Shown: positions 35,116 to 61,898, numbered from the stretch's first letter. The stretch is DNA of 64,000 nt from Macrostomum lignano (GCA_002269645.1 NIVC01000788.1:124001-188000), one strand, 5' to 3'. The notes: a model not told the origin generated them from the letters alone. Program-made: numbers and translations.

Positions 35116-35177
35116 TTCCCAGAGGCCCTTCATTGTTCATTAAAAAAGCCAACAGCTCCGAGCGCTGGGCAACTCAC

Positions 35178-35690: not shown

Positions 35691-36184
35691 TCACCTTTTG
35701 TTTTCATGAAATCGGTAAATTTTTTTTATAAAACAGTGGGTTCATAGCTTGCAAATATTGTTTATACCAATAACTCTTTGGTCTGCCAGTCATCCGCCCT
35801 GTTTTGCCCAGTGCCAGGCCGCCTGCTCCAGTTTCAAAGCTTCTCACTCGCTGCAAGAGACTCAAAAACACACACGGAAGTCTTTGCCTGATTTCTTGTC
35901 ATCCGATTCCCCAGAGACGGTCTGTGCGGTTAGAAGGGTACGGATCGATTCCAGCTCGGCTTTCGAACGCCTTTTGGATTAATTTCCTGTCCAGGGGTAT
36001 TTAAATTCCTATTTGCGGAAGGATTATCTGAGGATTAAAAGCTGGGACTGGGTTTGATTTTTTGTTTCTCTTCCGTCTCAATACTTTTATTCCCGCCGTT
36101 TGGATTCCTCCTTAACCTTAGATTTTATATCCCTTTCGAAAACGGTAATTAGTATAGAAACTCTCTCAGGTATGAAAATCTCGT

Positions 36185-37075: not shown

Positions 37076-37156
37076 TTTTCTCGGGGAATCTTCAACTAAA
37101 TAAGAGTTCAGCAGCCGCAAAGGTTGTGAATTGGTTCAAGTCCACCGCAGGCTCAC

Positions 37157-37551
37157 CAATCGGCAGGTTGCGGTAGCAGAGGCGGTGCCCAGATCGCAGA
37201 CTCCCAGAAAGCCCCTGTCCTGGTTGCGGTTCACCCAGCCAACGATGAGGTGCGTTGAGTTGAACCAGCGCACCAGGGTCACGTAGTGCTCTTGTGGCAC
37301 CGCCATCGGCTTCGACAGCTCGATTGTCCGCCGGCTGGCGATGTCGTAAACTCGCAGCGACACTTCCGTCAGCGGCGTTCTGGATCCGGCCTTCGGGTAG
37401 GGCACGCCGCGCTGCTGGATGTACATGTTGGTGGGGCTGCCGTACCAGGGCATGCGGTAGGCCTGCACGGCCGAGTCGTTGAACACCAAGTAGGCGATGC
37501 GCTCGTCGCCGGGGGACACCCAGAACGCGTCGCTGCTTTCCAGGATCTCCT
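37157..37551 (-). CDS. DPP exon (E)EILESSDAFWVSP..IAYLVFND..YPKAG..W.NR.Q
   Basis: Hallmark EE, WxSP, YPKAG and NRxQ motifs of the DPP4 family. Confidence 0.95.
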
Positions 37552-37582
37552 CTGCGTTCATTGAGGCAATGAGTGCGCGGTT

Positions 37583-37848
37583 TAGATTAGATCTGATTAG
37601 ATCAGATAAGATTAGATAGATTAGATTAAATTAGATTAGACTGTATTAGATCAGCTCAGATTAGATTAGATCAGATAAGATCAGATTAGATCAGATTAGA
37701 TTAGATTAGATTCGATCAGATTATATTAGATCAGATTAGATCAGATCAGCTCAGATTAGATCAGATTATATTAGATCAGATTAGATTAGATAAGATCAGA
37801 TTAGATTAGATAAGACCAGATTAGATCAGATTAGATTAGATTAGATCA
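37583..37848. repeat. (GATTA/GATCA)n pentamer repeat
   Basis: Direct inspection. Confidence 0.93.
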
Positions 37849-38019
37849 AAGGAAGACTGATAACGTTTTTTAAACAATCACTTATTTTAGTCGCAAAAAC
37901 CTTTAAAAACAATTAATTAGACAAGAGTTGGTACTTCAAATTCTGGCTTTATTTCCTATGAGATTTATCTAGAAGGCTCGAATACTTCCTCAACAAAAAT
38001 TATGAATCAGTGCCTGCAC

Positions 38020-38143
38020 CTTCATAAACCCAGTTGCAAGTGCCAACTGTGATGGCCGGGTCCAGCGGGCTGTTGGTGATCTTGACTGCCGGCTCCTCGA
38101 ACGGCTTTTCTGAGTAGTAAATATTGTTATCGAATACGAACGC
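38020..38143 (-). CDS. DPP exon AFVFDNNIYY..ITVGTCNWVYE
   Basis: FV..NNIYY and G..(D/N)WVYEE motifs. Confidence 0.93.
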
Positions 38144-38182
38144 CTGCGGGTTGGGATTAGAGTTGAGTACAAATTAACGGTA

Positions 38183-38775
38183 GGGACTGGCATCTGAGGG
38201 ACTGGCATCTGAGGGCCTGGCATCTGAGGGACTGGCATCTGAGGGACTGGCATCTGAGGGCCTGGCATCTGAGGGACTGGCATCTGAGGAACTGGCATCT
38301 GAGGGACTGGCATCTGAGGGCCTGGCATCTGAGGGACTGGCATCTGAGGGACTGGCATCTGAGGGACTGGCATCTGAGCTACTGGCATCTGAAGGACTGG
38401 CATCTGAGGGACTGGCATCTTGAGGGACTGGCATCTGAGGGACTGGCATCTGAGGGACTGGCATCTGAGGGACTGGCATCTGAGCTACTGGAATCTGAGG
38501 GCCTAGCATCTGAGGGACTGGCTTCTGAGCTACTGGCATCTGAGGGACTGGCATCTTGAGGGACTGGCACCTGAGGGACTGGCATCTGAGGGACTGGCAC
38601 CTGAGGGACTGGCATCTGAGGGACTGGCATCTTGAGGGACTGGCATCTGAAGGACTGGCATCTGAGGGACTGGCATCTGAAGGACTGGCATCTGAGGGAC
38701 TGGCATCTGAGGGACTGGCATCTGAGGGACTGGCAGCGGAGGGACTGGCAGCGGAGGGACTGAAGGGACTGGCAC
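38183..38775. repeat. 15-bp minisatellite
   Basis: (gggactggcatctga)n. Confidence 0.95.
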
Positions 38776-38899
38776 CAGAGGAGGGAGTGTGAGTCAGTGT
38801 ATTTGAAAAGCAGTTTTGTCACGCAGGCCACACAGATTCAATCAAAAATAGAGCTCTGTGAACAGCATCTACCGGTGGCTCAAGACTCAATCTGCTTAC

Positions 38900-38996
38900 C
38901 ACAAAGGCGCCGTCGGAGCCCCACTGCACGGCGCGAAGCCTGGCTGGATTAACTTCGCAATTCCCCTCCGGGCAGAGGCTCTTCTCTGTAATTCGC
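38900..38996 (-). CDS. DPP exon RITEKSLCPEG..LRAVQWGSDGAFV
   Basis: Phase 2 entry, gtaagc donor; L...W motif. Confidence 0.8.
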
Positions 38997-39199
38997 CTGC
39001 GGCGGGGGAGAGATTAAGAACTAAGCCTATAGCTTTGATAATTCGCCTCGTTGAGGCTTCTGGCACGTAGCGTTTGACCAAACAGAGAAATTTTAATCCA
39101 ACTGTTTTGCCCGCCAATGGCTTCATCAGCTCAATTAGATTTTCGGAAAGCATAGGCAAGCTGTCGGTCAAGCTCAAGGTCACGTTACAGACCACTTAC

Positions 39200-39261
39200 T
39201 GTCCTGGCGCTTTTGGCAGTGCGACCAGTTTGTAGAATGCGCTCGAGGAGTGCCGGTAAAT
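39200..39261 (-). CDS. DPP exon IYRHSSSAFYKLVALPKAPG
   Basis: IYRHS..A.Y motif; GT-AG sites. Confidence 0.85.
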
Positions 39262-39324
39262 CTGCAGCGATTTTTTTAGCAGAATTGTGTTGCTAGGAGT
39301 TCGTTGAACGCCTCTAAACACTCA

Positions 39325-39700
39325 GACCACTGACACTTTTAACCCTCCACTGTCACTTTTAACCCTTCACTGACACTTTTAACCCTCCACTGACACTTTT
39401 AACCCTCCACTGTCACTTTTAACCCTTCACTGACACTTTTAACCCTCCACTGTCACTTTTAACCCTCCACTGTCACTTTTAACCCTTCACTGACACTTTT
39501 AACCCTCCACTGTCACTTTTAACCCTCCACTGTCACTTTTAACCCTCCACTGACACTTTTAACCGTCCACTGACACTTTTAACCGTCCACTGACACTTTT
39601 AACCGTCCACTGGCACTTTTAACCGTCCACTGGCACCTCTAACCCTCCACTGGCACCTCTAACCCTCCACTGGCACCTCTAACCCTCCACTGGAACCTCA
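39325..39700. repeat. 20-bp minisatellite
   Basis: (cactgacacttttaaccctc)n. Confidence 0.95.
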
Positions 39701-39759
39701 AGCCCCTTCACGGGCATCTTTAAACCTCCAATCAAGTGCTGATAGTTAAAAGCCATTAC

Positions 39760-39828
39760 CTTTTCAGGACTACTTTGAATAAGCAGAGTTTGACAATCTC
39801 TCGAGGCGACAAAATGTCCAATGCTGCC
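39760..39828 (-). CDS. DPP exon GSIGHFVASRDCQTLLIQSSPEK
   Basis: Equivalent to the F.VS.D.Q..LL segment; phase 0/0. Confidence 0.8.
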
Positions 39829-39918
39829 CTACAATGAATGGGGCAGGAGAGAAGTTGAAAAATGTATGCGCGTTGCCGATCGATAGAGTATAATACACAT
39901 CGCATCGTTGATGGCTAC

Positions 39919-40043
39919 CTCGCTAAACTGGTCCTTCGACAGTAGCCTGGAAACGGACACAGTGTCATTGTTCTGGTCGAAGCTGGCCTGCATAATGTCG
40001 CCAGAGCTGGCGTTCAGGTACACCAGAACGTCTGCAGTAGCGC
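39919..40043 (-). CDS. DPP exon ATADVLVYLNASSGDIMQ..LLSKDQFSE
   Basis: cccag acceptor, phase 1/0, open frame. Confidence 0.8.
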
Positions 40044-40074
40044 CTGGGAAAAGGTGAAAATCAAGTGTTAATCT

Positions 40075-42320
40075 TTCAGCCCCACCTCACTCCAACTCTT
40101 ACCCTATCTGTATTAGTCTCTGATGTTTCCTGCCCCTCCAAGTCGCAACCCTCCCCAAAGTTTAGTATGTCAGCCACCTCACTCCCAACTCTAGCCCTAT
40201 CTGCATTGTGATTGGCTGGCAAAAGTTTCTGTGATGCTTCATACTCCTCCAAGTCGCAACCATCCCTAAAGTTTAGTATGGCAGCCATCCCCACCTATTC
40301 ACTCTTCAAAGATTTACCTTGTTAATTGGCTGGTAAAAATGGCCTACAGCATGTTCACAATCAATAGGGTCTTCTATCATTTATTACCTCTTTTGCTACA
40401 GCTGAGCCATTGGTAACGCAGCTGCCGCATCTTCCTCATCATTGACATCGCTTCGGTAAAGGTAATGGGTTCACCCAGATGGAGTTCGTCCGTTCCTTGA
40501 AAGTTGTCAATTTTTTGGCGAGTTAAACTTTGCTTGCAATGCATGAATTATCCCTAGAAAAACAGTTTCGTGCAAAATTTTAATGATCTAAAATTAATTA
40601 TCCAAGTAATAAGTTAGATTTATGTACTAGCATAGCAGGCTATAGGATTCTTTACTTGATTATTCAAGTTCTATTATCATTGGAGCAGACTCGTACTTGT
40701 AGTTATGCGATTATTGACGAAAAAGTTCCATATCGAATTTCAAGTAATGCAAGTAAGTATGGTGGAAACTATCAATGGCTATTTTTATTGGTAATCTGGC
40801 TTTAAAACATCCCTGATACACACTATAAACCCTATTGTATCCGTTTCGATTGTCTGGCGCAAGTTTCCTTCCCCAAGCTCTCTCTCTCACTCCACACCCA
40901 TTCACTTCCCGTTCCCCATTTTAGCCACCTCACTCCCTGTCCTTCACCGACCATCTTGATTGGCTGGCGCAAGTTTTCTGCCCCCAACCCCTCTTTCTCA
41001 CTCCACACCCATTCAACCCCCATTTTAGCCCATCACTCCCTGTCCTTCACCGACCATCTTGATTGGCTGGTGCAAGTTTCCTGCCCCAACCCCTCTCCCT
41101 CACTCCACACCCGCATTCAGCCGTCAATACTTTATCCTCCTCAGTCTGCCTTCTAAATGCCTTTTAATTCATTCCTCCACCTGTTTGACAATTTAGCAAA
41201 TTCCCTACTAATACTAATACGCAAACAGTAGTTGCGTACTGTATCTGTATGCGAGCTATTTTACAAACGGTGTGTGAACAAATACAGTACAGTACACAGT
41301 AAATCGCATTGTAAAAAAGCGGGGATAAAATACTGACTGACTACTTGTTGAGACGCACATAGAACATGAACAACAGGAAAAAACTGTGCGCCGAGTTCGA
41401 AAAACTCGTGTCCTGTGCACGTTTAACCATCAGAAATATGCACGTAAGCAAACGGAGTTATGGGAACATATTAGTTATCGTCCTAAGCAACGACCGCGTC
41501 CCAACCACGGCATAATCTTCCAGGCAGCAATATTGTTTGCTGCAGGTGTTTCCTACCCGTGTCCTGTCGGCTAAACCCACGGGGCAGGATAGCGAACCCA
41601 TTATAAATATTCAAAAGTCCACTAGCTGCGGCTATGCAGAAAAGCAGAAAACTTCTTTCTGATTCCTATTTTGGTTCGAATGTGCCGTTTTGTTTGGCCT
41701 TTGACGAAAGCAGAAAAAATCACATGACTTCGTATCCAGCGTTTTCTGAAACTATTATCTTAGTCTTTTCTAGCTTCAAAGCTATGCAGCAACAACCGAT
41801 AAAGTTTGTTTCAAGAATAAAAAACGATTTATTCGATTCAGTCAACAACTGATTGAAAGAATTATTGAATCTGATAAAAAACGACTGGAATCAAACCGCA
41901 TTCCGTGTCAACATTTATTCTGGTTTAGTTGGTTGACAAATATTTACATGTGTGGACTAGGGAACCATTCTTTCCTGCCCCTTAATCGCCGCTAATTGGC
42001 TGGCTTGAAGGTTCATTCAAATCATTTTACTCAATTTCCTTCCTAACCGTCTGGTTCTGCCCCACCCCATCTCCCCAACCCTGCTCCTCAATCACCGCTT
42101 ATTGGCTGGCTATAAGGCTCATTCCTTTCACTGACAATTCTTCCTAACCCACGCCTCTCTCGTTCTGTCCCACCCATCTCTCCTACCCTGCCCCTCAATC
42201 ACCGCTGATTGGCTGGCTATAAAGCTCATTAATTTTACTGACTATTCTTCCTAGCACACGCCGTCTCGTTCTGCCCCACCCCATCTCTCCAACCCTACCC
42301 CTGAATCACCGCTGATTGGC
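40075..42320. repeat. Three clusters (40075-40300, 40860-41110, 41990-42320) of degenerate ~60-100-bp C-rich repeats with gattggctg
   Basis: Repeated cccacc..ctc..gattggctgg units. Confidence 0.6.
40388..40495 (-). CDS. DPP exon TDELHLGEPITFTEAM..YQWLS (donor at 40388 or 40400)
   Basis: P.TF.E and W.S motifs following the TM exon; phase 1/1. Confidence 0.7.
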
Positions 42321-45926: not shown

Positions 45927-46041
45927 TCGGCGTTAACCACAAAATTGCTGCTCCGATCAGGGCCAGAATGGAGACGATCACCACCACGGCTATGACGACG
46001 CCTCTGAGATTCTTCTGCGCCGGCGCATTGCCAACCAGCTC
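45927..46041 (-). CDS. DPP shared exon 2: type II transmembrane anchor ELVGNAPAQKNLRGVVIAVVVIVSILALIGAAILWLTP
   Basis: tcctcag acceptor, phase 0 entry, gtgagt donor; resembles DPP10 [23 protein letters not shown]. Confidence 0.92.
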
Positions 46042-46069
46042 CTGAGGATTTTGGAATGTGGGTATAACA

Positions 46070-46368
46070 ATAATTGATTACACATGCCTTAGTGACCAGA
46101 TGTGCAACCGACAGCTCAGCCGCAGCTATTGCGCGGCGCATCTGAAGGCTGCGTACGGCTGCTCAGTCCAAGGACTGGGGGGTCGCCGCACACACCCTCA
46201 ATTATCCCAGCTAATGCTGGCACCCATTTTACAGCTGGGTGAACTGAAGCAATGCAGAGTTAAGTGTCTTGCTCAAGGACACAGATTGTTCCGTGTGGGT
46301 CGAGAATCGAACCCGCAACCTTTTAGTCGTGAGCCCGACGCTCTAACCACCACTGGGCTACAACCCCC
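46070..46368 (-). mobile_element. tRNA-derived CORE-type SINE
   Basis: Head gggggttgtagcccagtggtggttagagcg..ggttcgattc; central tgtgtccttgagcaagacacttaac..cttcagtt..ctgtaaaatggg (46223-46283) resembles the MIR CORE. Confidence 0.8.
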
Positions 46369-46954
46369 TTCTTTTGCGTAAAAGTATACAAAGATTGTCT
46401 GCGACCGCTGTCTATGGCAAAGCTTCCTTAAAAAAGGTTTTTAGGCTACTCTTCTAAGCTGATGTCAAATTGTCTCAGTTAAAGAAATGTGATAAGATTT
46501 AATGTACAGTGAAAAGTGAAAAGTTGCAAACAAAAACAATTTTGAATTCTGTAGAGAGACACCAGCTGGCCTGGATACAAGCGAAGTATTTTGAGGCAAT
46601 AGACTGACTGTACAATCAATTGGGAAGACCGAACCAGTTGCTCTCTCCGGCCAGAGATCAAAGGAGCCGAACAGCCCTCCCAACCCCGGATGAGCAAATA
46701 CAATAATCAAGAAAGCGCAGGCAAGCATAAAATGCTTATTGTTGCTACGCAGAAAGGGGTGAAGGAAATTGATTTGCTTTATTGCTGTAGAACGCAATAA
46801 GAGCAGCCAAAATATTCTCGCTTGCTGTCAGATTGCTAGCGGCCTCAAATTGTGCGACCGTCTTCTAGTTTAGCGTCTGGATTGCAGGTCTGACTGTGCT
46901 GCACGGGCCAGCAAATGTGACTTGGTTAATAGATATCTACACTGATTAACCTCA

Positions 46955-47428
46955 GGTAGGTAGGTAGGTGGGTAGATAGATAGATAGGTATGTAGATAGG
47001 TGTAGGTAGGTATGTAGGTAGATAGGTAGGTAGGTAGGTAGGTAGATAGGTAGGTAGATAGGTAGGTAGGAAGGTAGGTAGGTAGGTAGGTAGATAGATG
47101 GGTAGGTAGGTAGGTAGGTAGGTAGATAGGTGTAGGTAGGTAGGTAGGTAGGTAGGTAGGTAGATAGGTAGGTAGATAGGTAGGTAGGAAGGTAGGTAGG
47201 TAGGTAGATAGATGGGTAGGTAGGTAGATAGGTAGGTAGGTAGGTAGGTAGGAAGGTAGGTAGGTAGGTAGATAGATGGGTAGGTAGGTAGATAGGTAGG
47301 TAGGTAGGTAGGTAGGTAGGTAGGTAGGTAGGTAGGTAGGTAGGTAGGTAGGTAGGTAGGTAGGTAGGTAGATAGGTAGGTAGATAGGTAGGTAGGAAGG
47401 TAGGTAGGTAGGTAGATAGATAGGTAGG
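46955..47428. repeat. (GGTA)n microsatellite
   Basis: Direct inspection. Confidence 0.96.
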
Positions 47429-47686
47429 TACGTAGTTAAATATTATCTAAGTTCTTTTATATACATATGCACAGGTACAAAGTTGTTTGAGTGCCCACTT
47501 TGATATTCGAGATCTTTAGCACACCCAAACTCGCTCATTGAAGCAAATTGTTACTATTTATCAATCAAGGTACGTACACGTGCCTGGAAAGTATATGATC
47601 TGGTACTGGTAGACAGGCAGATATATTCATTTGAGTAAGCAGGGTAGCTACAGGTAGACAATTAGAACCATTCGTATCGAACTCAC

Positions 47687-47725
47687 TTCGTTGAGCGGCA
47701 CCGCCTGTTGCTTTGCCGCGTCCAT
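47687..47725 (-). CDS. DPP alternative first exon F: MDAAKQQAVPLNE
   Basis: ATG, 39 nt, gaa|gtgagt donor, phase 0. Confidence 0.7.
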
Positions 47726-48094
47726 AGCAACTGAAGCCGGTACTGTTAAAGTTAGCTTAGTTCAATGCCTAGCAGTGCTGTTGCTAGACAAGGATATGGG
47801 TCTTTTATGACAGCTCCGGTGTTCAACCGTTTATCAGCGGCCGCTCAGGAACAGCCGATAGACCCCCGCACAGCGTCTGAAAGACTTGGGTTCCCCTTGG
47901 AAGCGACAGCTCTGTGACTGGCCAGGCCCGAGCAGTCGCTTGCCTGTGGCCCGTCTCCTCCAGCCAGTCAGCGTTTAGCAGGTTATACAGAGCCTGCCAG
48001 CAGCCAGTGTGCTAAGGAAGAGAGGGGAGCCCTTGAACGCTAGGTCTTCAATTCCTAGGCTGTATGTTCTGTTCCACACTGTCTGCGGGACTGT

Positions 48095-48426
48095 CAGCAC
48101 TGAGTTCCCTTCTGTCTGTCTGTCAGTAGATGCGCTGAGTTCCCTTCTATCTGTCTGTCAGTAGATGCGCTGAATTCCCTTCTGTCTGTCTGTCTGTCTG
48201 TCTGTCAGTAGATGCGCTGAGTTCCTTTCTGTCTGTCTGTCTGTCTGTCTGTCAGTAGATGCACTGAGTTCCCTTCTGTCTGTCTGTCAGTAGATGCGCT
48301 GAGTTCCCTTCTATCTGTCTGTCAGTAGATGCGCTGAGTTCCCTTCTATCTGTCTGTCAGTAGATGCGCTGAATTCCCTTCTGTCTGTCTGTCTGTCTGT
48401 CTGTCAGTAGATGCGCTGAGTTCCTT

Positions 48427-48460
<34 letters not shown>

Positions 48461-48691
48461 AGTAGATGCACTGAGTTCCCTTCTGTATGTCTGTCAGTAG
48501 ATGCACTGAATTCCCTTCTGTCTGTCTGTCAGTAGATGCGCTGAGTTCCCTTCTGTCTGTTTGTCAGTAGATGCACTGAATTCCCTTCTGTCTGTCTGTC
48601 AGTAGATGCGCTGAGTTCCCTTCTGTCTGTCTGTCAGTAGATGCGCTGAGTTCCCTTCTGTCTGTCTGTCAGTAGATGCGCTGAGTTCCCT

Positions 48692-48785
<94 letters not shown>

Positions 48786-48805
48786 AGTAGATGCGCTGAG
48801 TTCTG
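48095..48805. repeat. ~35-bp minisatellite with an embedded variable (CTGT)n
   Basis: (ctgagttcccttctgtctgtctgtcagtagatgcg)n. Confidence 0.93.
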
Positions 48806-51389
48806 TCCGTCAGAAAGCAACGCTACCTTTTCTAATGTGTACAAGCTAATCTGTATGCATTGAAACTCAATCTAATAGTGATTGAAGACCATTATAGTTT
48901 AACAATTCACGTTATAATTTAATTTGCTTTCAATTCTTCGAGAGCAAAGTCGACAATCTCTGTTCAGCTGATGTCTGCACCTGCTGCTTGCACTCAGCCT
49001 TTGAGCGCATTAAAATATTGATCACACAGGAGTATTCAAACAGCATTATCTGCAACGCACAAAAATATGAAATGCATGAAAAAATAGGTTTGGATAAAAA
49101 TTTTAATTTCTTTAACTGCCCAAGTCAGTGTTGCAAGGAAGTAAAAAATTCAGCAGGCAGACGAGCAAACGAAAGTGAAGCAGTCAGTCAAGCTTCATAT
49201 TGTGCCCCATCTTTTTCTAGTTCCTTTCATTCTCAACCCAAGAATCTTTGAGTCAAAGAAGCCTCCCGCAGTGCACGCCATGTGCAGTTGGCAACAAGCC
49301 GCACGGAGGGTCAAACAGTCTGGTCCCGTTCCTTCCGCTGCCATTTTTGTTCGCCTCCGGGCAGCAGCTCTCCCTATCACGGCCTATTTAGACTTCGCTG
49401 TGAAGCCGCCATCCCAGCCCTCGCAGCCTCTCCTATCCCAAGCTTGCAGCTTCATCAGCTCTTAGCCTAGGGCTGAAATCGATAATTCGTCCTCCCCCTT
49501 TTCTTCTCTTCCTCATCCTGGCGTCTCTTGGCTTAAATAAAGAGAGATTCAGCTGAGACGGCTGCCAGCGTCTGTCTATTTCTCTGTCTCCCTTTTAAAA
49601 AGAAGAAGCAAGAGTTGCTTTGACTTTCTGACGGGTAGGAAATTGCCCTCTGAGCAATGCGCTAGCCAATTTAAGATAGCTTTCCGAGTCAAAGTCTCGT
49701 TGCAAACGAAAATTTGGATTCTAAATAAAATATGCTGGAAAAAAATCATTATGCCATGAAATAATCGGAATGCACTACTGATAATCAGTAGATTGGTTTT
49801 TTTCTATCCACGAACCAATTCGTTTCATCGAAAATTGTTGGAATGATGGATTTTATGCTCATATTTTTAAATCTTGCAATGTCAGAGTCAAAAGGGTTGA
49901 ATATCATCGAAAAAAATTTCAATTAAAACTAAATTTTAATATAGTTCAATTAATTTTTTTGAACTTTACTGTTACAGCTATATACAAAAAAGATGCTAAT
50001 TTTGCTACTGATTTTTTTACTATTTTACTTAATGTTATCATCACTGTCAATACACTCTAAATATCATTATTGATATCATGTTTTATTGTAAAAATAATTT
50101 TTTAGTTTAGTGTCATTGTACTTGGAAGAGTCACCCCTGAAATAATTTTATTTATCATAGAAACGGACTGGTTGAGATGCTACTAGAAGTAAGCTATGAT
50201 GGTAAGTAGCAGGGTTTTTTAACAAAAAGGAAACATTTGACAAATAAATTCAGACTGTCTTTTTCTGGTAAAAAAACTTTTTCGCACTCGACAAGAAATA
50301 GTTTTTGGAGTTCTTGGGCAATTGCCAAGTGCTAATTGCAGCGAGCTGCTGGGACCTCAGCTGTTGCTCCCCAAGCCCTACCGGTTTGCAAGTTGAGCTG
50401 CAATATTTCGAATTCGTCAGGGAAGGCGCGCATTCAATCGACTCCCGGGAAGCAAAATATTCGCGGCAATTCCCAGGAAAATTAATGGAATTGCGCGTCA
50501 AAGTTACGCGAAGTTTCCACTAGCCAGAATTGTTGCGTGAAATTGTGTTTTAATTCTCTTGGGAATTATTTTTAGATATAATCAGCTCAGTTGACAGAAA
50601 TGGACAGAATAGAAAACTATAGAGAGGGAGCTTATTAAAGTATGGGCGGACTGAAAAACAGAAGTAACTAAATTATTTTTATTTTTATTGCAGTGAATTA
50701 CAATGAATATCATAAATTCCATTATGAACGACTTGAGTTTTAATTTGTAAGTGATTTTTGCGTTTAATTTTGAAGTAAAGCTTTTAAAAGTGAATATATA
50801 ATTTATAGGTTACTTATTTTTGTTAATATTAAAAAACATAATATTTATGTAATACGCTCGTAATTTATTGGAATGGAATTTATTATTAAAAATCAAAACT
50901 AGGTCTTCCAAGTAGCTAGAGGCCTGACTCTTCCTCAAGTTTTCATCTGTTTCACAGTCACGCAAAAAACTTGTAAGCAGTATAGCAAAAACCGTTGTGT
51001 TTAGCTAGTAATTTTAATTCCTTAGCATACAGGAGCGTATAATTTACCTATGCATTACACAGTTATGCATGAAACACTTGACAAACTTACTTTTTATTAA
51101 AGCACACTAGTGCCATATTAAATTGTATTTAATTTAACGGTATTTTTAACTGCACTTTTAACGTACTTCTACTGTAAAATATTGTCAACGAAATGTCTAC
51201 CCTACTTTTTATTTCTGAATCATTTTTAAAACACTAAAACACAATTAAACAATTTTAATTTTTAATTTTAAACAACACCAATTTTTTTGTTGAAAATTTT
51301 AACACAACAGTCGATTGAAAGTACAAAGCTGGCATGGCGCTAAAGCCTAAAAAGTCTTGGCCCCGCGCCTCTCGCGCGTCCAGCCTCAC

Positions 51390-51422
51390 ATCTCCCTGCC
51401 GATGACAGTCGAGGCCATCCAT
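51390..51422 (-). CDS. DPP alternative first exon E: MDGLDCHRQGD
   Basis: ATG, 33 nt, gat|gtgagg donor, phase 0, in a GC-rich island. Confidence 0.5.
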
Positions 51423-51975
51423 TATTCATTGCCACCTTGGCCTGCTGGACCGCCATGCCAGCTGCTGAGAGCCGCGCGTGGGATAATTCCCAGCCAATAA
51501 CTCCCCTTAAGTGCTCCGCCTCCATTGATTGCCTCCTGCCGCAGCCCAGCTAATAAATCTAAATAATTTTGAGAGCTGGACTGGGGAGGCAATCGCTTGG
51601 CATTGGGGCGAAATTTGCAATTTTTCGCACTTGGGAATCCAATTTTTTTAGCTGATCGTCCAGTTTGGAAATTTTAGGAGAAAGGATGAAGCGAGGCCGC
51701 TGGTGGCATTTTTAGTGGGGGGGGGGGGCTAGCGGCTAAGCGGCATCGAATTTCCCAGACAGCTGGGCCGCTTCACGCCAATTTTGTCCATTTCCGAAGC
51801 TTTCATTCTCTCACTGTCCCGGCCTCTGTGCGGCAAAACAGCGGCATTGGAGTCCGTTCGGGATCCACAAGCAGAAGGGATAGATTGCCGAAGCGTGCAG
51901 TTGGGGACACCGGATATTGTCTGCGCTCTTTGTCGTTATTTAGCCGAGTTTTCCACTGTCCACCCAGCATGCGAC

Positions 51976-52025
<50 letters not shown>

Positions 52026-52625
52026 TTCTCTCTCTCTCTCTCTTTCTCTCTTTCTCTCTCTCTCTCAAACTAACTTTGTATTTAGTTTTAGTTTTAGTTA
52101 TTTTTGTAACAGTTTCTCAACTACAGTTTTATTGCAGTTTATTTTTTAGCTCCCCAAATTTTACTTGGCAGTGATGAGGAGATTTGAGAGTCATATTTTC
52201 TTAGAACCAAAACTGGGCCCTTAGATTACTTGAGTTGCGCGCAGTCCACCCATAACAGGTCGCAAAACCCTAGCCCAGTTGTCCGGTCTAGGTCTTGGGC
52301 TTCCTCTTCTGCCTCTCTTCTTAAATCTCTCTCCTCTCTCCTCTCTCATTTCTCCTCTCCCTCCGCTCTCATCTCTCATCTCTCATCTCTCATCTCTCCT
52401 CTCATCTCTCTCATTTCTCCTCTCCCTCCGCTCTCATCTCTCCTCTCATCTCTCCTCTCATCTCTCCTCTCATCTCTCCTCTCATCTCTCTCATCTCTCC
52501 TCTCTTCTCTCCCGTCTGTCCTTGCTTCTTTCTCATCTCTCCTCTCTTATCTTTCTCATCTCTCCTCTCCCTCCTATCTCTTCTCTCTCATCTCTTTTCT
52601 CTCCCTCTCCTCTAGTCTCTTTTCT
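51976..52625. repeat. (CT)n and CT-rich degenerate tracts (51976-52066, 52325-52625)
   Basis: Direct inspection. Confidence 0.85.
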
Positions 52626-52825
52626 TTCTCATCTATTCTTCGCATTCTCAAAAACGGGGCGCTGCTTCGTCTACTTTTTAACAGCTTATATAGCTGTTCT
52701 AACTGTTACAGGGTGCAGCCGAGTGCAGTACAATAAATATATCATATTTTTACTCCTCAACATATCAATTTAGCACTATCTAGGCAAAGCATTAACATAC
52801 AGGATAGCCTAAGAAAGGCCCCTAC

Positions 52826-52867
52826 CTCATCCGCGTCCAAGTCGTCATTGTACTCGGACTCGCTCAT
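52826..52867 (-). CDS. DPP alternative first coding exon D: MSESEYNDDLDADE
   Basis: ATG, 42 nt, gag|gtagg donor, phase 0; acidic N-terminus. Confidence 0.7.
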
Positions 52868-54313
52868 CTCGCCAGTGGCAGCAGGGGTGGCTGCAACTGT
52901 CGGGATCTGGGGCTGGGATCTGTGGGGAAGCGAGCCCGCTCAGTGTCAACCGCAGATGGCAGCCGGTCCAACTGTGCCCAACTGTCCAGGCATGCGGGAT
53001 GCCACAATAAAGAGGGGGATTTCCTTAGGAAATTGAGTCGGCAAAGTTGAGGCGAAAAGAGAGAGAGGACGGAGGCCTCGGGAAGCTGCTAGAAGTAAAA
53101 GAGAAGCCCTCACTCTTGTTGCTATGCCAGTCTGACCGGCTCTTATCCTACCAGACCTCGCCTGCCAGCGCTCGCTCCCCCTTTCCTCGCCCGCTCTCTT
53201 CCTCCTAATTCTGGTTGGACAACAAATGCAAAAGCAGCAACTAGGGCTGATCCCTCTTCTGTTGCTGTTGCAAAATTGAACCCCAACAGCTCTCCGACTT
53301 TTGCCGCCGCAGAAAAAGGTTGGAAGAAGATTTTCTGGTTGATGACAGCATTTTTTGCTGAGCTCTAAACTGCGGTTTTTCTCCAGCGATGCTTCGTACT
53401 ATTCCTGTCTTTATTTATCATCAGTTTATTTCTTGCTTGCCAACAGACCTCCGTGCGGGACACCCACAGCTCCTTCCTCTGTGTTCTTTACCCAGAAAAG
53501 CCTTCAAACTTTGCCTTGAGAGAGATCGCGCGCGCCAGTGAAGCCGGCAGCTACTAGTATTAACGACTCCTTCGCGTAGTAAGGGGAAAACTAGATGATT
53601 TGAAGGAGAAAATGGGATAAAAATAGGCAGAGAAGGGGGAGGGCGAGGGCGAGGGCGAGGGCAACAAACCGGAAGAAGGCAGGGCCAGAGGATCAGTGCA
53701 AAGCTGGGCGGCCTGGAGAGGGTTGTGGGGGATTATTTGACGGGAGGAGGAACTGAGGTGGAGGCGAAGACGGAGAAGGAACCGCTGAGCAGTGCTAGAA
53801 GTGAGGCTGAACAGAGGCCAAGAGAGAGAGGGAGACAAGGACAGGAGAATTTCTGGCGAAAGAAAGGATCCGCATAGGAGCGAGTTATTGAGAAGAGAAT
53901 TGAGCAGGTACAAGGCACTGAGGCTTGAACTATAGCTGCAGAGAGCGCACTAGAGGCCGCGCTTGGATCACCACATCTTGGACCTCTTGGTGGCAAGTTA
54001 GTTGATAGTATTATTAAGCTATACTTAATCTACTTATAGCTTCGGTTCGCATCGAGACTAGGCCTGCCCACTACATAACGTGACTGATAGACAAAGGCCA
54101 ACCCGGATGTCAGTGGCATGCGCAATCAAACAGAGCAGTGAACCTTTCACTTTGTTAGGGCTTCACATTTTACCTGTGCATTTAAGTTGAGCCATGAACA
54201 GCTGAAGCGGAAGGCCGCTTGCAGCAGCTGGATGGGCGGCAGTTTTCAGAAACGCCTTCGACAACATCTCGTCCCACAGCCAGCTTGAATGAATATGGAA
54301 TGGAATGAATAAA

Positions 54314-54375
54314 GGGAATCGAACCAGGGGTCGTGGCGCAAGAGTCGCTCCGTCCCCTTGCGTTCTCCTGCTTTG
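54314..54375 (-). mobile_element. Degenerate SINE head related to 44460-44660
   Basis: gggaatcgaaccagggg.cg.ggc...gagagtc is shared. Confidence 0.5.
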
Positions 54376-55194
54376 GTCAATCCGAGATAGAAATTCTAAC
54401 GCACACTGAGCTACATCTCGCCCACTTAGGCCTGCCGCTAACACGTGACCGATGGACAAAGGTATCTGGAGCGCATTATAAAACGAACGGCCCCCTTGAA
54501 GGACTGCTCAAGGCTGCTTTCACCCTCGCCCTCAAATTCTTTAGGTTTGCGGATTTCTGGCCCATACAGCTGATGCACTTTAGATCCCTCAGCGGCTTCC
54601 ATTCTGCCGAGACAGTTTGGCGGCAGATATCAGAATTTAAGAAAGGGAAAGGATTACCGAAAGATGGGCTGAAAGACTGACAGAGCTTTTTTCTCTGAGG
54701 GCCTTCATTCTATCCGCTTTCTTTCCTAACCCCTCTCTTCTCTCCCCGCTCCTCTCCCCATCTCTGAATAATCCCGTCCCTGCCCCAGTTGGCCCAAAAT
54801 GCATGACTATAAGTGGTGGTTCTGTTCAACCAGGTGATTGATCAGTTCCTGTCCGCCCCGAGACAAGTGTATTTGGCCTCGAGGCTGAGGAGCAGACTGT
54901 TGGAGAAGACGGCCTGCAGACCTGCTCCCACTTGTCTCTGTTTGTCTCTGCACCCCCTTCTGCCCCGATCTCATGCTGCAGCCACATATGCGAGCTGATA
55001 GAACTTATCAGCTGATGTGCGATAGCTCCCCGGTGAACGAGTGATCAAGCTGCTACTGCAGGGAATTCGGATACGATGCTTAGCGAACTACTCACAGTAA
55101 GCTATTGGAGTGTCATCTGACTGAGCTTGAATTTACTACGAACTGCGCTGCGATACAAGACCAAAAAGAAAAATAAGGCTACCCAAGTACCACC

Positions 55195-55666
<472 letters not shown>

Positions 55667-55676
55667 CGCGCCTCAC

Positions 55677-55817
55677 CTCCAGCCTGTCAAATGTCTGATC
55701 AACCGTCTCTGTCCTCAGCAGCTGCTGATGAGTAGTCCGTCCTCCGCCACCGCCGCCGCCGCCGCCGCTGCCGCGGTTGCCCCCTGAAGGCATGGCGCCC
55801 GATCTGCTGGCCAGCAT
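55677..55817 (-). CDS. DPP alternative first exon C: MLASRSGAMP..poly-G..LLRTETVDQTFDRLE
   Basis: ATG, 141 nt, gag|gtgagg donor, phase 0; paralogous to exon B. Confidence 0.75.
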
Positions 55818-56384
55818 TTCGCTCACAATGCGGACCTAAGGCTATACTTGCTTTCTAAATCGCTTCTGCCTTTCTAAAGCGCGTTTTCTCTCAGCGCTCT
55901 TTAAGCTGCTCCAAGAAATGACTTGCCGCTGCGATACATTTATATTCACTCAGAAAGCATTCTCACAGTGGAGAACAGACGGCCCCAAAAGCAAGAGAGT
56001 CGCGCACGTCACTGCCAAGTCAGGTTCACTCAGGAAATTCATTCTCTTTGTGGCAGCTCGGGACAACTGTGCTTTCACAATGGCCTTGGAGCACGCTCTC
56101 GCTCACCCTCCCTCCCCCACCGTCTCTGTGCCCCTCAGTCTGTTGCATATTCCTGTCCAGTAGCCAAATTATTCTGTTGGAGATTTCAGCGTTTCCGTAA
56201 ATAGAAAAAGCAAACTTGATTTGAGGAAAAGCGCTTGACCTTAGGCCTGACATCAGCGCGAGAAAAACACAATCTTATTTTGCAGTTACCTCAGAATTAT
56301 CGAAAATCTAAACATTATAAAACGAGTGACAGTCTTAAAATTCCATATCCGCATGGAGTGGCAGAAAAAAATCGCTATTGGAGG

Positions 56385-56585
56385 GTGTGACAGATTCTTA
56401 CAATCCATTGAAATGGTGTGACAGACCTTTACAATCTCCTGGATTGGTGTGACAGATCCTTACAATCCCTTGGAATGGTGTGACAGATCCTTACAATCCC
56501 ATAGATAGGAGTGACAGAATTCTTACGGTCAGATAGAATGGAGTGACAGAATTCTTACGGTCAAATAGAATGGAGTGACGGATTT
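56385..56585. repeat. ~31-bp short minisatellite
   Basis: About 6 units of gtgtgacaga..cttacaatcc..gaatg. Confidence 0.8.
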
Positions 56586-57654
56586 TAGAATCAAACGTGC
56601 GAGCTTATGTGTTATATCTTCACTGAAAAGATATAACAAAATGTTAGGAAAAAAATCCCAATTCTCCACACCGCGTGTATGTTCTAAAAAATGAAAACTC
56701 CAGCTAAAAAAAGTTCTCGGAATTCTGTACTGCTAGTTACAGTAGAAAACCTGGGAATAGGGCTTTTCTAAGAAAAAGAAACGCTCGTTGACGGCTCTAA
56801 TGAGCTGCTGGTGTTGACTTAGGCGCGATGGAATGTGAAGTGTTTGGGCAGAGAATTTCCCGTTAACTAGCTAATTTATTTGTTAGCTAAAGCTCTCATT
56901 TGACAAGGTCAAAAAAACGCTCATTAATAGGCCATATCTAGTAGCCAGGGGCAGAAATTTGTGTCTTTTTTGTCTAAATTCCCTCCATTAGCTGCCACCA
57001 GCCCTAATCCCTTTGGATTAAACATCGATGCAAAATAATCGAAAGACATTGAGAGAAAAATTCTAAGAAGAGATAAACAGACAGGCAGACAGGCGGTTGA
57101 CTACATGTAGAGGGAATTACTTGTCTCAATTTGCATGCTAATCCCGCCTCGATGCATTCAGTGTGGATGGCAGCTCTTGACAGTGGCAGAGATGCGTAGA
57201 CAGTCACAGTTGCAGGACTGAGAGCAGAGGCGGCTGCAGTGCAGTTTCTGAGGCTAAGAAACAGTTAAAAGTGCAATTTGAGCGCAAGAAAGAATCGCAA
57301 TTCAGCAAATCCCAATCCTTATTGCCTTCACTATCTTTATTTAAGCATTCAAGTTGGGCCAAGTTTTCTCGATTGATTTCCAAGCTCTCACTCTTACTAT
57401 ATAGTGGTAGGTATCAAAGGTTTTTTTAAGCAGGATTGAGTTGAATCAAATTCTGACGGAAAAGTCGCATTCGGCACTTTATCAAGCGGGAGTTGGCTGG
57501 GCTGGCCCACCACTGCCTCCAGGGAGCTTGTGGGGGAGGGCAACAGTCCCCTCCAGAGGGAGCTGCGGACCCTCTTCGAGTGCTAAATATGCTGAGCAAT
57601 AGTTTGCCTGAGCAGGGAGCAGCTCCATTGGGATTCTTTTGGGGCCTCTCTTCT

Positions 57655-58085
57655 CCACCTCTTCTCTCTCCTCTTTCCTCTCTCCTCTCTCCTCTCTCCT
57701 CTCTCCTCTCTCCTCTCTCCTCTCTCCTCTCTCCTCTCTCCTCTCTCCTCTCTCCTCTCTCCTCTCTCCTCTCTCCTCTCTCCTCTCTCCTCTCTCCTCT
57801 CTCCTCTCTCCTCTCCCCTCTCTCCCTCTCCTCTCTCTCTTCTCTCCTCTCTCCTCTCTCCTCTCTCCTCTCTCCTCTCTCCTCTCTCCTCTCTCCTCTC
57901 TCCTCTCTCCTCTCCCCCTCTCTCCCTCTCCTCTCTCTCCTCTCTCCCTCTCCTCTCTCTCCTCTCTCCTCTCTCCTCTCCCCCTCTCTCCCTCTCCTCT
58001 CTCTCTTCTCTCCTCTCTCCTCTCTCCTCTCTCCTCTCCCCCTCTCTCCCTCTCCTCTCTCTCTTCTCTCTTCTCTCCTCTTTCG
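57655..58085. repeat. (CTCTCCT)n repeat
   Basis: Direct inspection. Confidence 0.92.
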
Positions 58086-59130
58086 TCTCCCATCGTTTTT
58101 TTCTATCCTACCTTATTCTTATATCTCTCACCCTCCTTTCTCTCCTTCTATCATAAATGCTTTCCATATTTTTTATATTCAATGGCAGCATCAAACCACA
58201 AGCAAAATTTAGTATAACTCATTCAGATCTCATGCAGTTCGCATGAGCACAGCTGAGCCTCTGATCATCCGCAGGCCATGACAAACTTTTCTGAGATGAA
58301 CAAGCTAAGCATGGAACTTTTATCCAGATTCCAGGTCGCTTCCCACTGCCACTCGTATCCTCCCCAACCGATTTCCTTCTCAATCCATTCCGGGGCCTCA
58401 GTTGTCCAATGAATATTTTATTTTCATCGCGCACGCTGCACTCAGCCGAGCAAGTGGAGGCGCCGTGCCGGATCTTCGGCTATCTCTCCCGTCTCTTCAC
58501 CTCCCCACCCTGCTTGCGGAGTTTTATGCGATGCATCCGCGGGACAGGCCGACCCGCCTCTTCCCTATGCCAGCTGCGCGGAACAGCCCGCGCATTCTGC
58601 AATGCGTTCTGGGATCGGCTTGATAGAGTTAAAAGCAGAAAATGTCTGCCCAAATCAGTGCCTAATTTATTGGTTTTCCATTGCTGTTGCATTGACTCTC
58701 AGGAGTTACTAAACATGAAACTTAAAATAGCCGCTGAAGTTTTATGATAGCGCAGCCACAGGGAACCAGCATTCCGGAATTTTTTTACTTTGGGCGCTGG
58801 CCGGGGAGGGAAACAGAATCTAGCTGCGTTAGCACTTCGAGATTTTTAAACTTTGGGCACTGATTTTTTCAGAGATTTTTTTTGTTCAAAAAGTTATGGG
58901 GCTTCTCTGAATTGGGTCTTTTGCAACATTTTTTCGATTGGCATTTCTTATATTTTTTATTGACACCAGGCTCGTTAACTAGACTCGAACCCAGGACCTT
59001 CTTGGTGCTTAATAATAGCTTTATTCGTTGGATTGCTAGTCGACTTGTGTTAAATCCACCTGGGCACTAATCCGACTCGAACCCAGGACCTTCTTGGCGC
59101 TTAGTCTCTATTGGCGGCTCCTGTTCTCAC

Positions 59131-59304
59131 CTCCATATTCTCGAACACGGTGTCAACGTTCTCCGTGCGCCTGTTGAACCGCCCCTTCAGCAGGGCACCG
59201 CCACCGCCGCCGCCGCCATCACCGACGTGATCGTCGCCTCCCCCGCCGCCACCACCGCCGCCGCCACCGCCTCTGCCGCCGACCGTGACGCGAGCGGCGA
59301 ACAT
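59131..59304 (-). CDS. DPP alternative first exon B: MFAARV..poly-G..FNRRTENVDTVFENME
   Basis: ATG, 174 nt, gag|gtgaga donor, phase 0. Confidence 0.75.
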
Positions 59305-59631
59305 GACTTTTATCAGCTATTTATTAATTTATAAGAAACTCAACGCGACTGAAACACGTCGACTGTGTCGATAGCCCCAGCGATTTAGAAGGCTAAGCTT
59401 ACATATACAGTAATAATATGCAACCAATGGGGCCAACCTTAGCCAACCACAGCTAGCCATGGTGGATTTGGACTGGAGCTCGCCTTCCACCCTCCACTTT
59501 GCGGCCTCTCTCGGTGTGAGCAGAGCGGCTTTGAATTTGTCAGCAATGGAGTTGTTGAACTCTGTCCAATTGCGGAGTGGTGGCATTATGCTGACAGTAA
59601 TTTCAGATAATTCTTACTTTTGTTAATATGA

Positions 59632-60288
59632 CAATTCTCACGATTGCACTGTCTAGTTCTCAAGGTTGCATTGTCTGTTTCTCACGGTTGCACTGTCTGT
59701 TTCTCACGGTTGCATTGTCTGTTTCTCACGGTTGCATTGTCTGCTTCTCACGGTTGCACTGTCTGTTTCTCACGGTTGCATTATCTGTTTCTCACGGTTG
59801 CATTGTCTGTTTCTCACAGTTGCATTATCTGTTTCTCACGGTTGCACTGTCTGTTTCTCACGGTTGCATTGTCTGTTTCTCAAGATTGCATTGTCTAGTT
59901 CTCAAGGTTGCATTGTCTGCTTCTCACGGTTGCATTATCTGTTTCTAACGGTTGCATTATCTGTTTCTCACGGTTGCATTATCTGTTTCTCACGGTTGCA
60001 TTATCTGTTTCTCACGGTTGCATTGTCCGTTTCTCACGGTTGCATTGTCTGTTTCTCATGGTTGCATTGTCTGTTTCTCACGATTGCATTGTTTGTTTCT
60101 CACGGTTGCATTGTCTGTTTCTCACGGTTGCATAGTCTGTTTCTCATGGTTGCATTGTCCGTTTCTCACGATTGCATTATCTGTTTCTCACGGTTACATT
60201 GTCTGTTTCTCACGGTTGCATAGTCTGTTTCTCACGGTTACATTGTCTGTTTCTCACGGTTGCATAGTCTGTTTCTCATGGTTGCACA
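59632..60288. repeat. 22-bp minisatellite
   Basis: (tctcacggttgcattgtctgtt)n. Confidence 0.95.
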
Positions 60289-61204
60289 GCACAGTCTGGT
60301 TCTTACGTTCATATCACCTTCTTATAATTTTCCTGTCTACTTCTTGCAATAATACTAGCTATTTTTCAATACTACCTACTTCTCACGATTTATCCTGTCA
60401 CTATTCTATTGTCTACCGGTAATCTACACTAACGCAATGCTCTTCCCAGAAAAATTCAATGAGCTAATGCTCATAAATCTTACCTAGCCAGCTGTCAAGT
60501 GTCGGTACTGAACTGAGGTCTGCAGAAATCCCCGAGAGCCCAAGCTACCAGGAGCAGAAGCAGCATGCGGTGCCTTCTTTGTCTAACCATGGCTTGATTT
60601 ATTAATGCACTGCTAGGGTTGGCAGTCAGGCCATTGCAGCCGTGTACCACCCTCAAACTCAAAAAGCAATATTGTTGTCTCTATTGTTGTTGCACCGCGG
60701 ACAGAGCGGGGAGATGGTGCACAGCAGAAGAAGCGAGTGGCGGAATTCCTCTTTGAAGTTGTTTTCTTTTAAGTGACTCAATTTTGGGTTGAATTTTATT
60801 AGCTAAATTGTTTTCAAGAGGTCCTCAGTTCGAGTCTCAGCTCTTGGAAAAAATTTCTGAAACCCAGAACCCATGCACTGGGTGCAATATACATGGCCTG
60901 AGTGAATTCAAAGCTTTCATCTTAATTAAGTTCTGTATTCATCGTGGTGCGCTTGCGTATAAAGTCTGTTAGCTGCTACTAATAGTAAGACGAACAGTCG
61001 AAAAAAACTGTCGAAAAAATTCTGAACAAGTCAAGCAATAAAATGTCGACTAGATTGAATTTCAAGCTACTGATAGTAGCGTGGTTTGCTTATCAAAGTT
61101 TGATTTTTTGGGAAGCTTAGCGGTGAGATTCTCTTCAGGATGCACGCGCAGCCTCATCAAGAATCGAGCCCGGGTCCTCTAGTTCAAGAGAGTGACGCTC
61201 ACGA

Positions 61205-61495
61205 CCCCTGCCTTCCTGCGACCCCCCTGCGACCCCCCTGCGACCCCCCTGCGACCCTCCTGCGACCCCCTGCGACCCCCTGCGACCCTCCTGCGACCCC
61301 CCTGCGACCCCCTGCGACCCTCCTGTGACCCCCTGCGACCCCCTGCGACCCCTCTGCGACCCCTCTGTGACCCCTCTGCGACCCCTCTGTGACCCCTCTG
61401 CGACCCCCTGCGACCCCCTGCGACCCCTCTGCGACCCCTCTGCGACCCCCTGCGACCCCTCTGCGACCCCTCTGCGACCCCCCTGCGACCCCCTA
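61205..61495. repeat. ~10-11-bp repeat (gcgaccccct)n
   Basis: Direct inspection. Confidence 0.92.
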
Positions 61496-61616
61496 CAAGT
61501 CAAAAAGTAAGAAAATTCTAGTTAAAAAACTCAGTCTTCGCTACGTTTACTACTACACAACATATCGGCTGCCGAACGTTCTCTCTCTCTCTCTCTCTCT
61601 ACCATCTCAGCCTCAC

Positions 61617-61898
61617 CGCCTGCAGCTGCGCCAGCCTGGCCGCCTCCTCATCCCGCCTGCTCGTCCCGCCGGCCGCCGCTTTTTGGCCGCCGCAAGTCGC
61701 CGCCAGCTCCGCCTTGGCCTCAGCGGCCGCTGCAGCAACGGCGCCTTCGCCGCCTCTGTTGCTGTTGCCTTGGCGACTGGCGGTGGCGGCTTGGCCGGCC
61801 TGCCGCCGACGAAACAGCCGCCGCCAGTGGCTGTCCGGGTCTTCGGCGATGACATCGTCGGCGTAGTCTTCGAACAGCGGGTCCGGAGGCGCCGACAT
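61617..61898 (-). CDS. DPP alternative first exon A: MSAPPDPLFEDYADDVI..RLAQLQA (94 aa)
   Basis: ATG, 282 nt, gcg|gtgagg donor, phase 0, GC-rich coding style like other host exons. Confidence 0.65.

Follow-up and report, generated by a model that had tools for sequence, protein, structure and literature searches.

Alternative first exons are a known property of the genes for the dipeptidyl peptidase-like proteins DPP6 and DPP10, in which they give rise to variable cytoplasmic N-termini on a common core (PMC3973911). In place of the catalytic serine, vertebrate DPP6 carries Asp and DPP10 carries Gly, and this serine is intact in DPP10 of the fly, which is both an auxiliary subunit of Kv4 channels and an active peptidase (Shiina et al. 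2016, PMC4873792). The present analysis concerns the minus-strand region between positions 45,927 and 61,898 of a 64,000-nucleotide (nt) stretch of DNA from the flatworm Macrostomum lignano (GCA_002269645.1, NIVC01000788.1:124001-188000), referred to as the window. The region lies at the 5' end of BOX15_Mlig002127g4, a gene of the DPP6/DPP10 type. A sequence-only reading of the window had described it as an array of at least six alternative first exons and had pointed to the vertebrate genes as precedent, a statement borne out by the published work on DPP6 and DPP10 (PMC3973911). The region forms the 5' module of this gene, in which alternative use of 5' exons, with a probability of roughly 0.55, would provide alternative cytoplasmic tails.

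Wherever compared, the window is 100% identical to contig NIVC01000788.1 of GCA_002269645.1. Translation of eighteen exons on the minus strand, separated by canonical GT-AG introns, yields precisely PAA76838.1 (BOX15_Mlig002127g4, 850 amino acids). Since exons 52867-52826 and 46041-45927 are part of this exact translation, phase 0 at position 46041 is confirmed, in agreement with the earlier proposal of a transmembrane (TM) exon starting in phase 0 with ELVG. The exon table rests on PAA76838.1, and human DPP4 and DPP10 sequences served as tblastn guides only. Together with two further 850-residue copies (PAA89369.1 and PAA74979.1), the protein was recovered by an exhaustive HMMER search with one UniRef model; two UniRef gene models of M. 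lignano (P0001 and P0002) match the window exons at ~100% identity. The annotated gene comprises the following elements:

Gene model, minus strand: exon 1 at 52867-52826, exon 2 at 46041-45927 and exon 18 at 22061-21894, followed by TAA; exact match to PAA76838.1.
21891..40495, minus strand: body exons of the DPP gene, from the exon table and Pfam matches, with the catalytic exon at 25845-25484 containing GWSYGG.
45927..46041, minus strand: common exon 2, 115 nt, starting in phase 0 after cctcag with GAG CTG GTT GGC (ELVG).
52826..52867, minus strand: exon E, the annotated first coding exon (MSESEYNDDLDADE), donor GAG/GTAGGG; the spliced coding sequence is exact.

Within the product, Pfam detects DPPIV_N (2.3e-63) and Peptidase_S9 (5.5e-42), and the layout is that of a type II membrane protein with a short cytoplasmic tail, one TM helix, a DPPIV_N beta-propeller and a Peptidase_S9 alpha/beta-hydrolase domain. 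The propeller exon scores 70.9 bits with DPP10 and 63.6-64.8 bits with DPP6, compared to at most 51.8 bits with DPP4 and 45 bits with FAP. Moreover, the nearest non-flatworm matches of a paralogue (P0004) in a protein search are DPP6/DPP10. What had been called a DPP4/DPP10-like protein can accordingly be placed as an S9B member of the DPP6/DPP10-like type, nearer to DPP10 and DPP6 than to DPP4 in its propeller exon. Loss of the catalytic serine, the hallmark of the inactive vertebrate members, is not observed, and the product retains GWSYGG, GTGDDNVH and YPDEDHS. It is a DPP6/10-type protein of the ancestral, probably active kind, with an intact catalytic Ser-Asp-His triad. In this respect it resembles fly DPP10, likewise a DPP6/10-like protein of an invertebrate in which the TM-proximal region is conserved and the catalytic serine retained. 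Function of the fly protein has been shown experimentally, and that of the flatworm protein is a prediction; N-terminal isoform diversity was outside the scope of the fly study (PMC4873792).

Exon 2, beginning at 46041, is the first part common to all products. It encodes ELVGNAPAQKNLRG and the TM helix, with the juxtamembrane motif ELVGxxPxQKNxRG conserved directly in front of the helix, and aligns to the juxtamembrane motif and TM segment of human DPP6 (full-length PDB chains, E = 6e-6); among the DPP-family PDB matches, only DPP6 chains cover the juxtamembrane region. In the DPP6/DPP10-like branch this motif takes the form ELVGxxPxQRNW(K/R)G. Two human DPP6 isoforms in the PDB diverge exactly at the boundary of the flatworm exon (...NVM/ versus ...EED/ELVGS). 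In 34 retrieved homologues the motif ELV[GSA]...RNW[KR]G follows N-termini of 1-129 unrelated residues. RefSeq isoforms diverging exactly in front of ELV[GS] were found for Ixodes scapularis (X1-X7, four N-termini including a bare 'M'), Tubulanus polymorphus (X1-X4, four N-termini), Dreissena polymorpha (X1-X3, two or three N-termini) and Anneissia japonica (X1-X3, two N-termini). Judged from these annotated proteins, alternative N-termini at this point are the norm of the family and already part of the public annotation of other invertebrates.

Upstream of exon 2, two or more exons are present that possess an ATG of their own, an open frame and a donor of compatible phase. All ten pairs of coordinates given in the sequence-only reading are correct on the minus strand. 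Its six main segments (282, 174, 141, 42, 33 and 39 nt) start with ATG, are open over a multiple of 3 nt and are followed by GTGAG or GTAGG, and its three weaker phase-0 segments (58167-58132, 56148-56107 and 51847-51815) are present as described. The last residue is Glu in four of the main segments, Asp in another and Ala in the remaining one; because GAG/GT is the donor consensus in phase 0, the terminal Glu is no independent evidence. Besides exon E, four of the main segments have coding signatures:

61617..61898, minus strand: exon A, candidate alternative first coding exon of 94 residues, donor GCG/GTGAGG.
59131..59304, minus strand: exon C, candidate alternative first coding exon of 58 residues with poly-Gly and the tail RRTENVDTVFENME, donor GAG/GTGAGA.
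55677..55817, minus strand: exon D, candidate alternative first coding exon of 47 residues with poly-Gly and the tail LRTETVDQTFDRLE, donor GAG/GTGAGG.
47687..47725, minus strand: exon F, probable alternative first coding exon (MDAAKQQAVPLNE), donor GAA/GTGAGT, 1.6 kb upstream of the TM exon.

Codon-usage log-odds were trained on exons 2-18 of the gene itself, with its introns as background. They amount to 0.78 (A), 0.83 (C), 0.58 (D), 0.51 (E) and 0.66 (F) bit per codon, and all five exons outscore the 49 chance candidates found on both strands elsewhere in the window, which have a maximum of 0.47, so that none reaches 0.5. The remaining five of the ten upstream candidates with an acceptable donor score 0 bit per codon or less.

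Exon E forms the start of PAA76838.1, PAA89369.1 and PAA74979.1 and is thus joined to exon 2 in three gene copies of the Mlig_3_7 annotation; it is a genuine, conserved first coding exon spliced to 46041. An E-like N-terminus, MSETAECQNDVGDLDAEE directly before ELVGS, heads a paralogue model (P0042, P = 0.03), and short acidic, Tyr-containing N-termini precede ELVG in mollusc, tick, mite and insect orthologues. Such an N-terminus recurs as M..DPYPIYDDE, MADDNLYDDE, MTEADNYDD, MGSEYDDFED and MSESEYNDDLDADE in tick, mite, wasp, mosquito, clam and flatworm (P0018, P0035, P0021, P0029, P0159). Pairwise similarity of acidic tails (A with E; E with Mactra or Ixodes) is not significant against composition-preserving shuffles (P = 0.1-0.5), and homology of these tails was therefore dropped in favour of a common character only. 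The recurrence suggests a conserved variant of ancient origin, or else a motif for sorting or phosphorylation.

Exon F, situated between E and exon 2, is probably an alternative first coding exon. It resembles the other N-terminus of the same paralogue, MDTRKHTQLPD in front of ELVGS in model P0004 (69 of 20000 shuffles, P = 0.0035); a protein search with P0004 yielded no paralogue copy from Mlig_3_7 that could be placed on a contig. The Mlig_3_7 assembly contains three near-identical copies of the locus itself, L001 (NIVC01000152.1), L002 (NIVC01000910.1) and L003 (NIVC01000788.1, the window), which show a mosaic divergence of 0-12% and fit the known hidden polyploidy of M. lignano. Between the window and L001, exon F differs at two positions, both synonymous, compared to 13 differences in 300 nt of flank. 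Exon 2 likewise has two differences to L002, both synonymous, with 16 differences in 300 nt of flank. L002 carries a 4.5-kb insertion upstream of exon D, and its gene is ~8 kb longer; comparisons with this copy leave out A, C and an intervening open reading frame (ORF), B, which the insertion places beyond the compared flank.

Exon A is preceded by an in-frame TGA 9 nt upstream, with no in-frame acceptor. Its ORF is kept in L001 despite one in-frame 3-nt insertion and five synonymous and five non-synonymous changes, whereas the indels flanking it measure 7, 11, 5 and 10 nt. A 72-codon ORF (MILKNPTHSQ...) at 61910-62128 on the minus strand ends 12 nt before the ATG of A and would be an upstream ORF if transcription starts further upstream. 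The codon signal of exon C is frame-specific and extends into its non-Gly tail (0.74). The tail of D is invariant in L001 and L002. Directly before their donors, the tails of C and D share the pattern R-T-E-x-V-D-x-x-F-x-x-x-E, and the anchored tails reach a similarity score of 37, whereas unrelated pairs from the window attain 21 at most. Once corrected for composition, a BLASTP comparison of C with D lacks significance (E = 1.0), and homology was judged by this empirical null of anchored tails instead. For four of the seven conserved residues the codons differ between C and D, conservation is lowest at third positions, and no DNA similarity was detected in the flanks of C and D, self-comparison of the 16-kb region returning tandem repeats only. 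Codon pattern and unlike flanks together carry the signature of an old tandem duplicate pair of exons kept under protein-level selection. Pfam searches of A and C gave no match, and for the tails of A, C and D no counterparts were found among 45 other N-termini. A, C and D are probably coding and represent lineage-specific candidate exons.

In the proposed arrangement, five ATG exons of phase 0 would precede exon 2, with E as the ancient, annotated start, F between E and exon 2, and A, C and D further upstream. The most likely mechanism would be alternative transcription start with alternative use of 5' exons, by which the same ectodomain would receive cytoplasmic tails of about 13, 14, 47, 58 and 94 residues in front of ELVG. 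For A, C, D and F, we infer both transcription and a role as alternative starts; in the public coding sequence only E is spliced to the common exon. The confidence given to this reading and those given to the alternatives weighed below overlap and need not sum to one.

Several observations weigh against such an array. The bare pattern, defined as ATG, open frame, phase-0 GTRAG donor and at least 30 nt, occurs nine times on the minus strand between 46042 and 62000, compared to 4.7 +/- 2.1 in block-wise dinucleotide-preserving shuffles (P ~0.05), and once on the plus strand; it is only marginally unusual and near chance level. Codon scores partly reflect GC content and richness in Gly and Ala, poly-Gly and poly-Ala stretches raising them; the non-Gly tail of D scores only 0.03, and discrimination of the frame is weak in the first 33 codons of A. 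Owing to the brevity of E and F, no more than about a dozen residues enter each similarity test, the proteins of the paralogue come from ML2 gene predictions rather than cDNAs, and the gene copies, diverged by 0-5%, are too alike for strong selection tests. Finally, E is the sole start of each of the three gene copies in the Mlig_3_7 annotation, and the 10 kb upstream contain no annotated gene. This annotation, together with a region full of tandem repeats and of long ORFs on both strands, would be expected if E were the only real start and A, C, D and F were GC-rich low-complexity sequence, untranslated or untranscribed, or parts of non-coding transcripts, and the failure to find homologues in other phyla for the tails of A, C and D points in the same direction. 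However, conservation of the C and D tails with synonymous changes between unlike flanks is hard to obtain without translation, five of the ten upstream candidates exceed the entire null set in codon score, the only indel of A between copies is in frame, F matches the N-terminus of a paralogue, and multiple N-termini are the rule in the DPP6/DPP10 gene family. A single start at E is, on this evidence, unlikely.

The other alternatives concern the manner in which the upstream exons are joined, and involve possible acceptors next to the ATGs, designated C', D' and E'. Two elements have to be considered:

52868..52919, minus strand: acceptor cluster with CAG acceptors and open in-frame extension upstream of the ATG of E, codon log-odds +0.5 per codon.
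59440..59586, minus strand: ORF B, an exon in the UniProt model A0A1I8I163, with a weak codon score of 0.23.

An AG in phase 0 is located a few codons upstream of the ATG in C, D, E and F, and in the window no stop codon interrupts the chain A-C'-D'-E'-TM. A, C', D' and E' could thus be consecutive internal symmetric (phase 0-0) exons of one tail of ~250 residues, with incidental ATGs. No public model other than A0A1I8I163 (P0002) includes A, C and D, and it indeed chains A, B, C, D and E, which speaks against alternative starts and is the arrangement that the sequence-only reading itself had named as contrary to its proposal; moreover, the codons in front of the ATG are coding-like in D (+0.8) as well as in E. 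ORF B was rejected as an exon, since the paths A-B-C and B-C both meet stop codons in this assembly. With respect to this assembly A0A1I8I163 also contains two internal frameshifts (61739 in A, 59256 in C). Moreover, the acceptors C' (59316) and D' (55835) are weak and consist of TAG, the nearest in-frame stop, with pyrimidine contents of 0.47 and 0.35, compared to a mean of 0.67 in the 17 real acceptors of the gene, 14 of which are CAG; the codons before the ATG are non-coding-like in C (-0.55 over four codons) and in F (-1.1 over ten codons). A chained transcript would also give a longer ORF than that of the Mlig_3_7 coding sequence, which starts at E in three copies, and all orthologues with several isoforms diverge directly before ELVG. 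Because of the frameshifts, the unjoinable B, the weak C' and D' acceptors, the non-coding codons before the ATGs and the short annotated ORF, the chain of A0A1I8I163 was judged unreliable; this model has the look of an ab initio prediction, an annotation artefact from an assembly rich in indels, and a constitutive chain is improbable. The model A0A1I8FB56 (P0001), derived from another copy, is similarly garbled. The acceptors of E', by comparison, are as strong as the real ones, with exon starts at 52919 in phase 1 and at 52912 and 52906 in phase 0. The latter two, rather than 46041, may be the acceptors for A, C and D, in which case the common part would begin with IPTVAATPAATGEMSESEYNDDLDADE, and transcripts from the interval between D and E would be trans-spliced there to the spliced leader (SL) and start at the ATG of E. 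This arrangement falls within alternative 5' exon use, the acceptor of A, C and D being the sole point of difference. The first strong acceptor after a donor is normally used, the E' extension is open and coding-like, and the junction of D to E' at 52906 is the sole well-formed upstream junction in P0002. In M. lignano ~30% of the genes are trans-spliced (PMC8629364), and TTGCAG at 52890 fits the published motif of trans-splice acceptors. However, isoforms of other species diverge at ELVG and not further upstream, and the single difference between copies in the E' extension is non-synonymous. Splicing into E' is a tentative reading and rather unlikely as a whole, while the E' region itself could serve as a cis acceptor for upstream exons, as an SL acceptor or as both.

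A further variant would combine promoter choice with SL trans-splicing, the leader supplying an in-frame initiator codon as one arm of an N-terminal isoform switch in a peptidase or auxiliary channel subunit. The SL of M. lignano (CGGTCTCTTACTGCGAAGACTCAATTTATTGCATG) ends in AUG (PMC8629364), and because the acceptors at 46041 and at 52906/52912 are of phase 0, its addition there would give an in-frame start. Products would be a tail-less form (M followed by ELVGN...) and M followed by IPTVAATPAATGEMSESEY, besides the cis-spliced isoforms of A, C, D, E and F. C, E and F each have the motif [TC]TNCAG in the 60 nt upstream of them, but it was rejected as evidence because it is too weak, being expected at 0.14 per site and present also at one non-coding-like candidate. 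As a means of diversifying the tail, this combination is very improbable. A tail-less form is annotated in Ixodes scapularis, where nothing but one Met precedes ELVSS in isoforms X4, X6 and X7 (P0169, P0171, P0172); M. lignano would yield the same product if an AUG-ending leader were added at 46041.

Four of the segments listed in the sequence-only reading have codon scores that do not differ from those of chance candidates:

51390..51422, minus strand: segment MDGLDCHRQGD, codon log-odds -0.01, mediocre donor score of 6.8, without homologue.
58132..58167, minus strand: weaker candidate, codon log-odds -0.3, adjoining a CTCTCCT tandem repeat, judged chance.
56107..56148, minus strand: weaker candidate, codon log-odds -0.43, judged chance.
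51815..51847, minus strand: weaker candidate, codon log-odds -0.07, upstream extension entering a (CT)n repeat, judged chance.

The first of these is probably a chance ATG-to-GT segment. Accordingly, from the proposed six first exons E stands as real, F as probable and A, C and D as probable coding exons, while 51422-51390 is at chance level, and the three weaker candidates are not upheld as first exons.

The 5' region is extremely dense in tandem repeats (55228-55666, 46954-47435, 59635-60286, 62332-63652, 57659-58089 and 48097-48803). Their units are (ACT)~147, starting 11 nt after the donor of exon D, (AGGT)~121, a 22-mer x30, a 15-mer x86, (CTCTCCT)~60 and a 35/207-nt array, and they generate many long spurious ORFs on both strands. 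Downstream of the DPP gene, a convergent gene for an EH-domain/UIM protein of ~718 residues occupies positions 11891-19709 of the plus strand (last exon ORF 18375-19709). It ends ~2.2 kb from the DPP stop codon and is present downstream of all three DPP copies. Intron 11 of the DPP gene contains three overlapping plus-strand ORFs (29221-30592; 158, 122 and 202 residues), which by eye resemble a degraded retroelement and contain stretches similar to reverse transcriptase and to GIY-YIG; a Pfam search of them found nothing. An Rfam search of the window was likewise without match. A word-indexed protein search with a body exon and with the concatenated candidate N-termini returned only the ML2 models P0001 and P0002 and no transcript-derived proteins of A, C, D or F. 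Neither P0001 and P0002 nor two window ORFs had an exact match in a contig collection, and the Mlig gene identifiers are not mentioned in the searchable literature.

If several of the exons are used, flatworms would share the tail-switch design of DPP6/DPP10, in which one ectodomain has exchangeable cytoplasmic tails and the switch point is the residue before ELVG, and would have it on a peptidase predicted to be still active. Together with the isoform sets of tick, nemertean, bivalve and crinoid, the design would then date to early bilaterians, before the loss of peptidase activity in the vertebrate members. As a model accessible to transgenesis and RNA interference, M. lignano would be tractable for studies of tail function such as Kv4/Shal gating, trafficking and cell-type targeting. 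The public annotation would in this case be incomplete (Mlig_3_7, with a start at E only) or wrong (A0A1I8I163), which an isoform-aware re-annotation would correct.

Comparison with vertebrate DPP6 (DPPX; DPP6a/K/L/D/S) and DPP10 (DPPY; DPP10a-d), whose alternative first exons are joined to a common exon 2, reveals the same protein architecture and a common part that starts at the same residue, ELVGNAPAQKNLRG in the flatworm. In these genes the cytoplasmic tails, which are short and unrelated, come from several upstream exons with an ATG (PMC3973911), as proposed here. In contrast to the vertebrate proteins, the flatworm product keeps the catalytic serine in GWSYGG, its tails are not homologous to the vertebrate exon 1 variants, the array covers 16 kb rather than hundreds of kb, and the use of several starts is a prediction.

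The genes annotated as 'inactive dipeptidyl peptidase 10'-like in other invertebrates come close in the tails themselves: short acidic tails with Tyr (MTDPYPIYDDE) resemble E, and Tubulanus has a Gly-rich tail. These sets are annotated mRNA models, whereas the annotation of M. lignano is limited to the E isoform, and for A, C and D no counterparts were detected beyond Macrostomum.

The variable exons of UGT1A and the protocadherins are large, mutually paralogous and encode whole domains. With the UGT1A and clustered protocadherin loci the flatworm region shares a general plan, in that several 5' exons with their own ATG and donor could join one common exon. However, only C and D are paralogous here, A, E and F are unrelated to them, and the variable parts are tails of 13-94 residues rather than domains, so that the likeness to a UGT1/protocadherin array drawn in the sequence-only reading was overstated. 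The locus represents a new flatworm instance of the known DPP6/DPP10 architecture and not a new kind of system.

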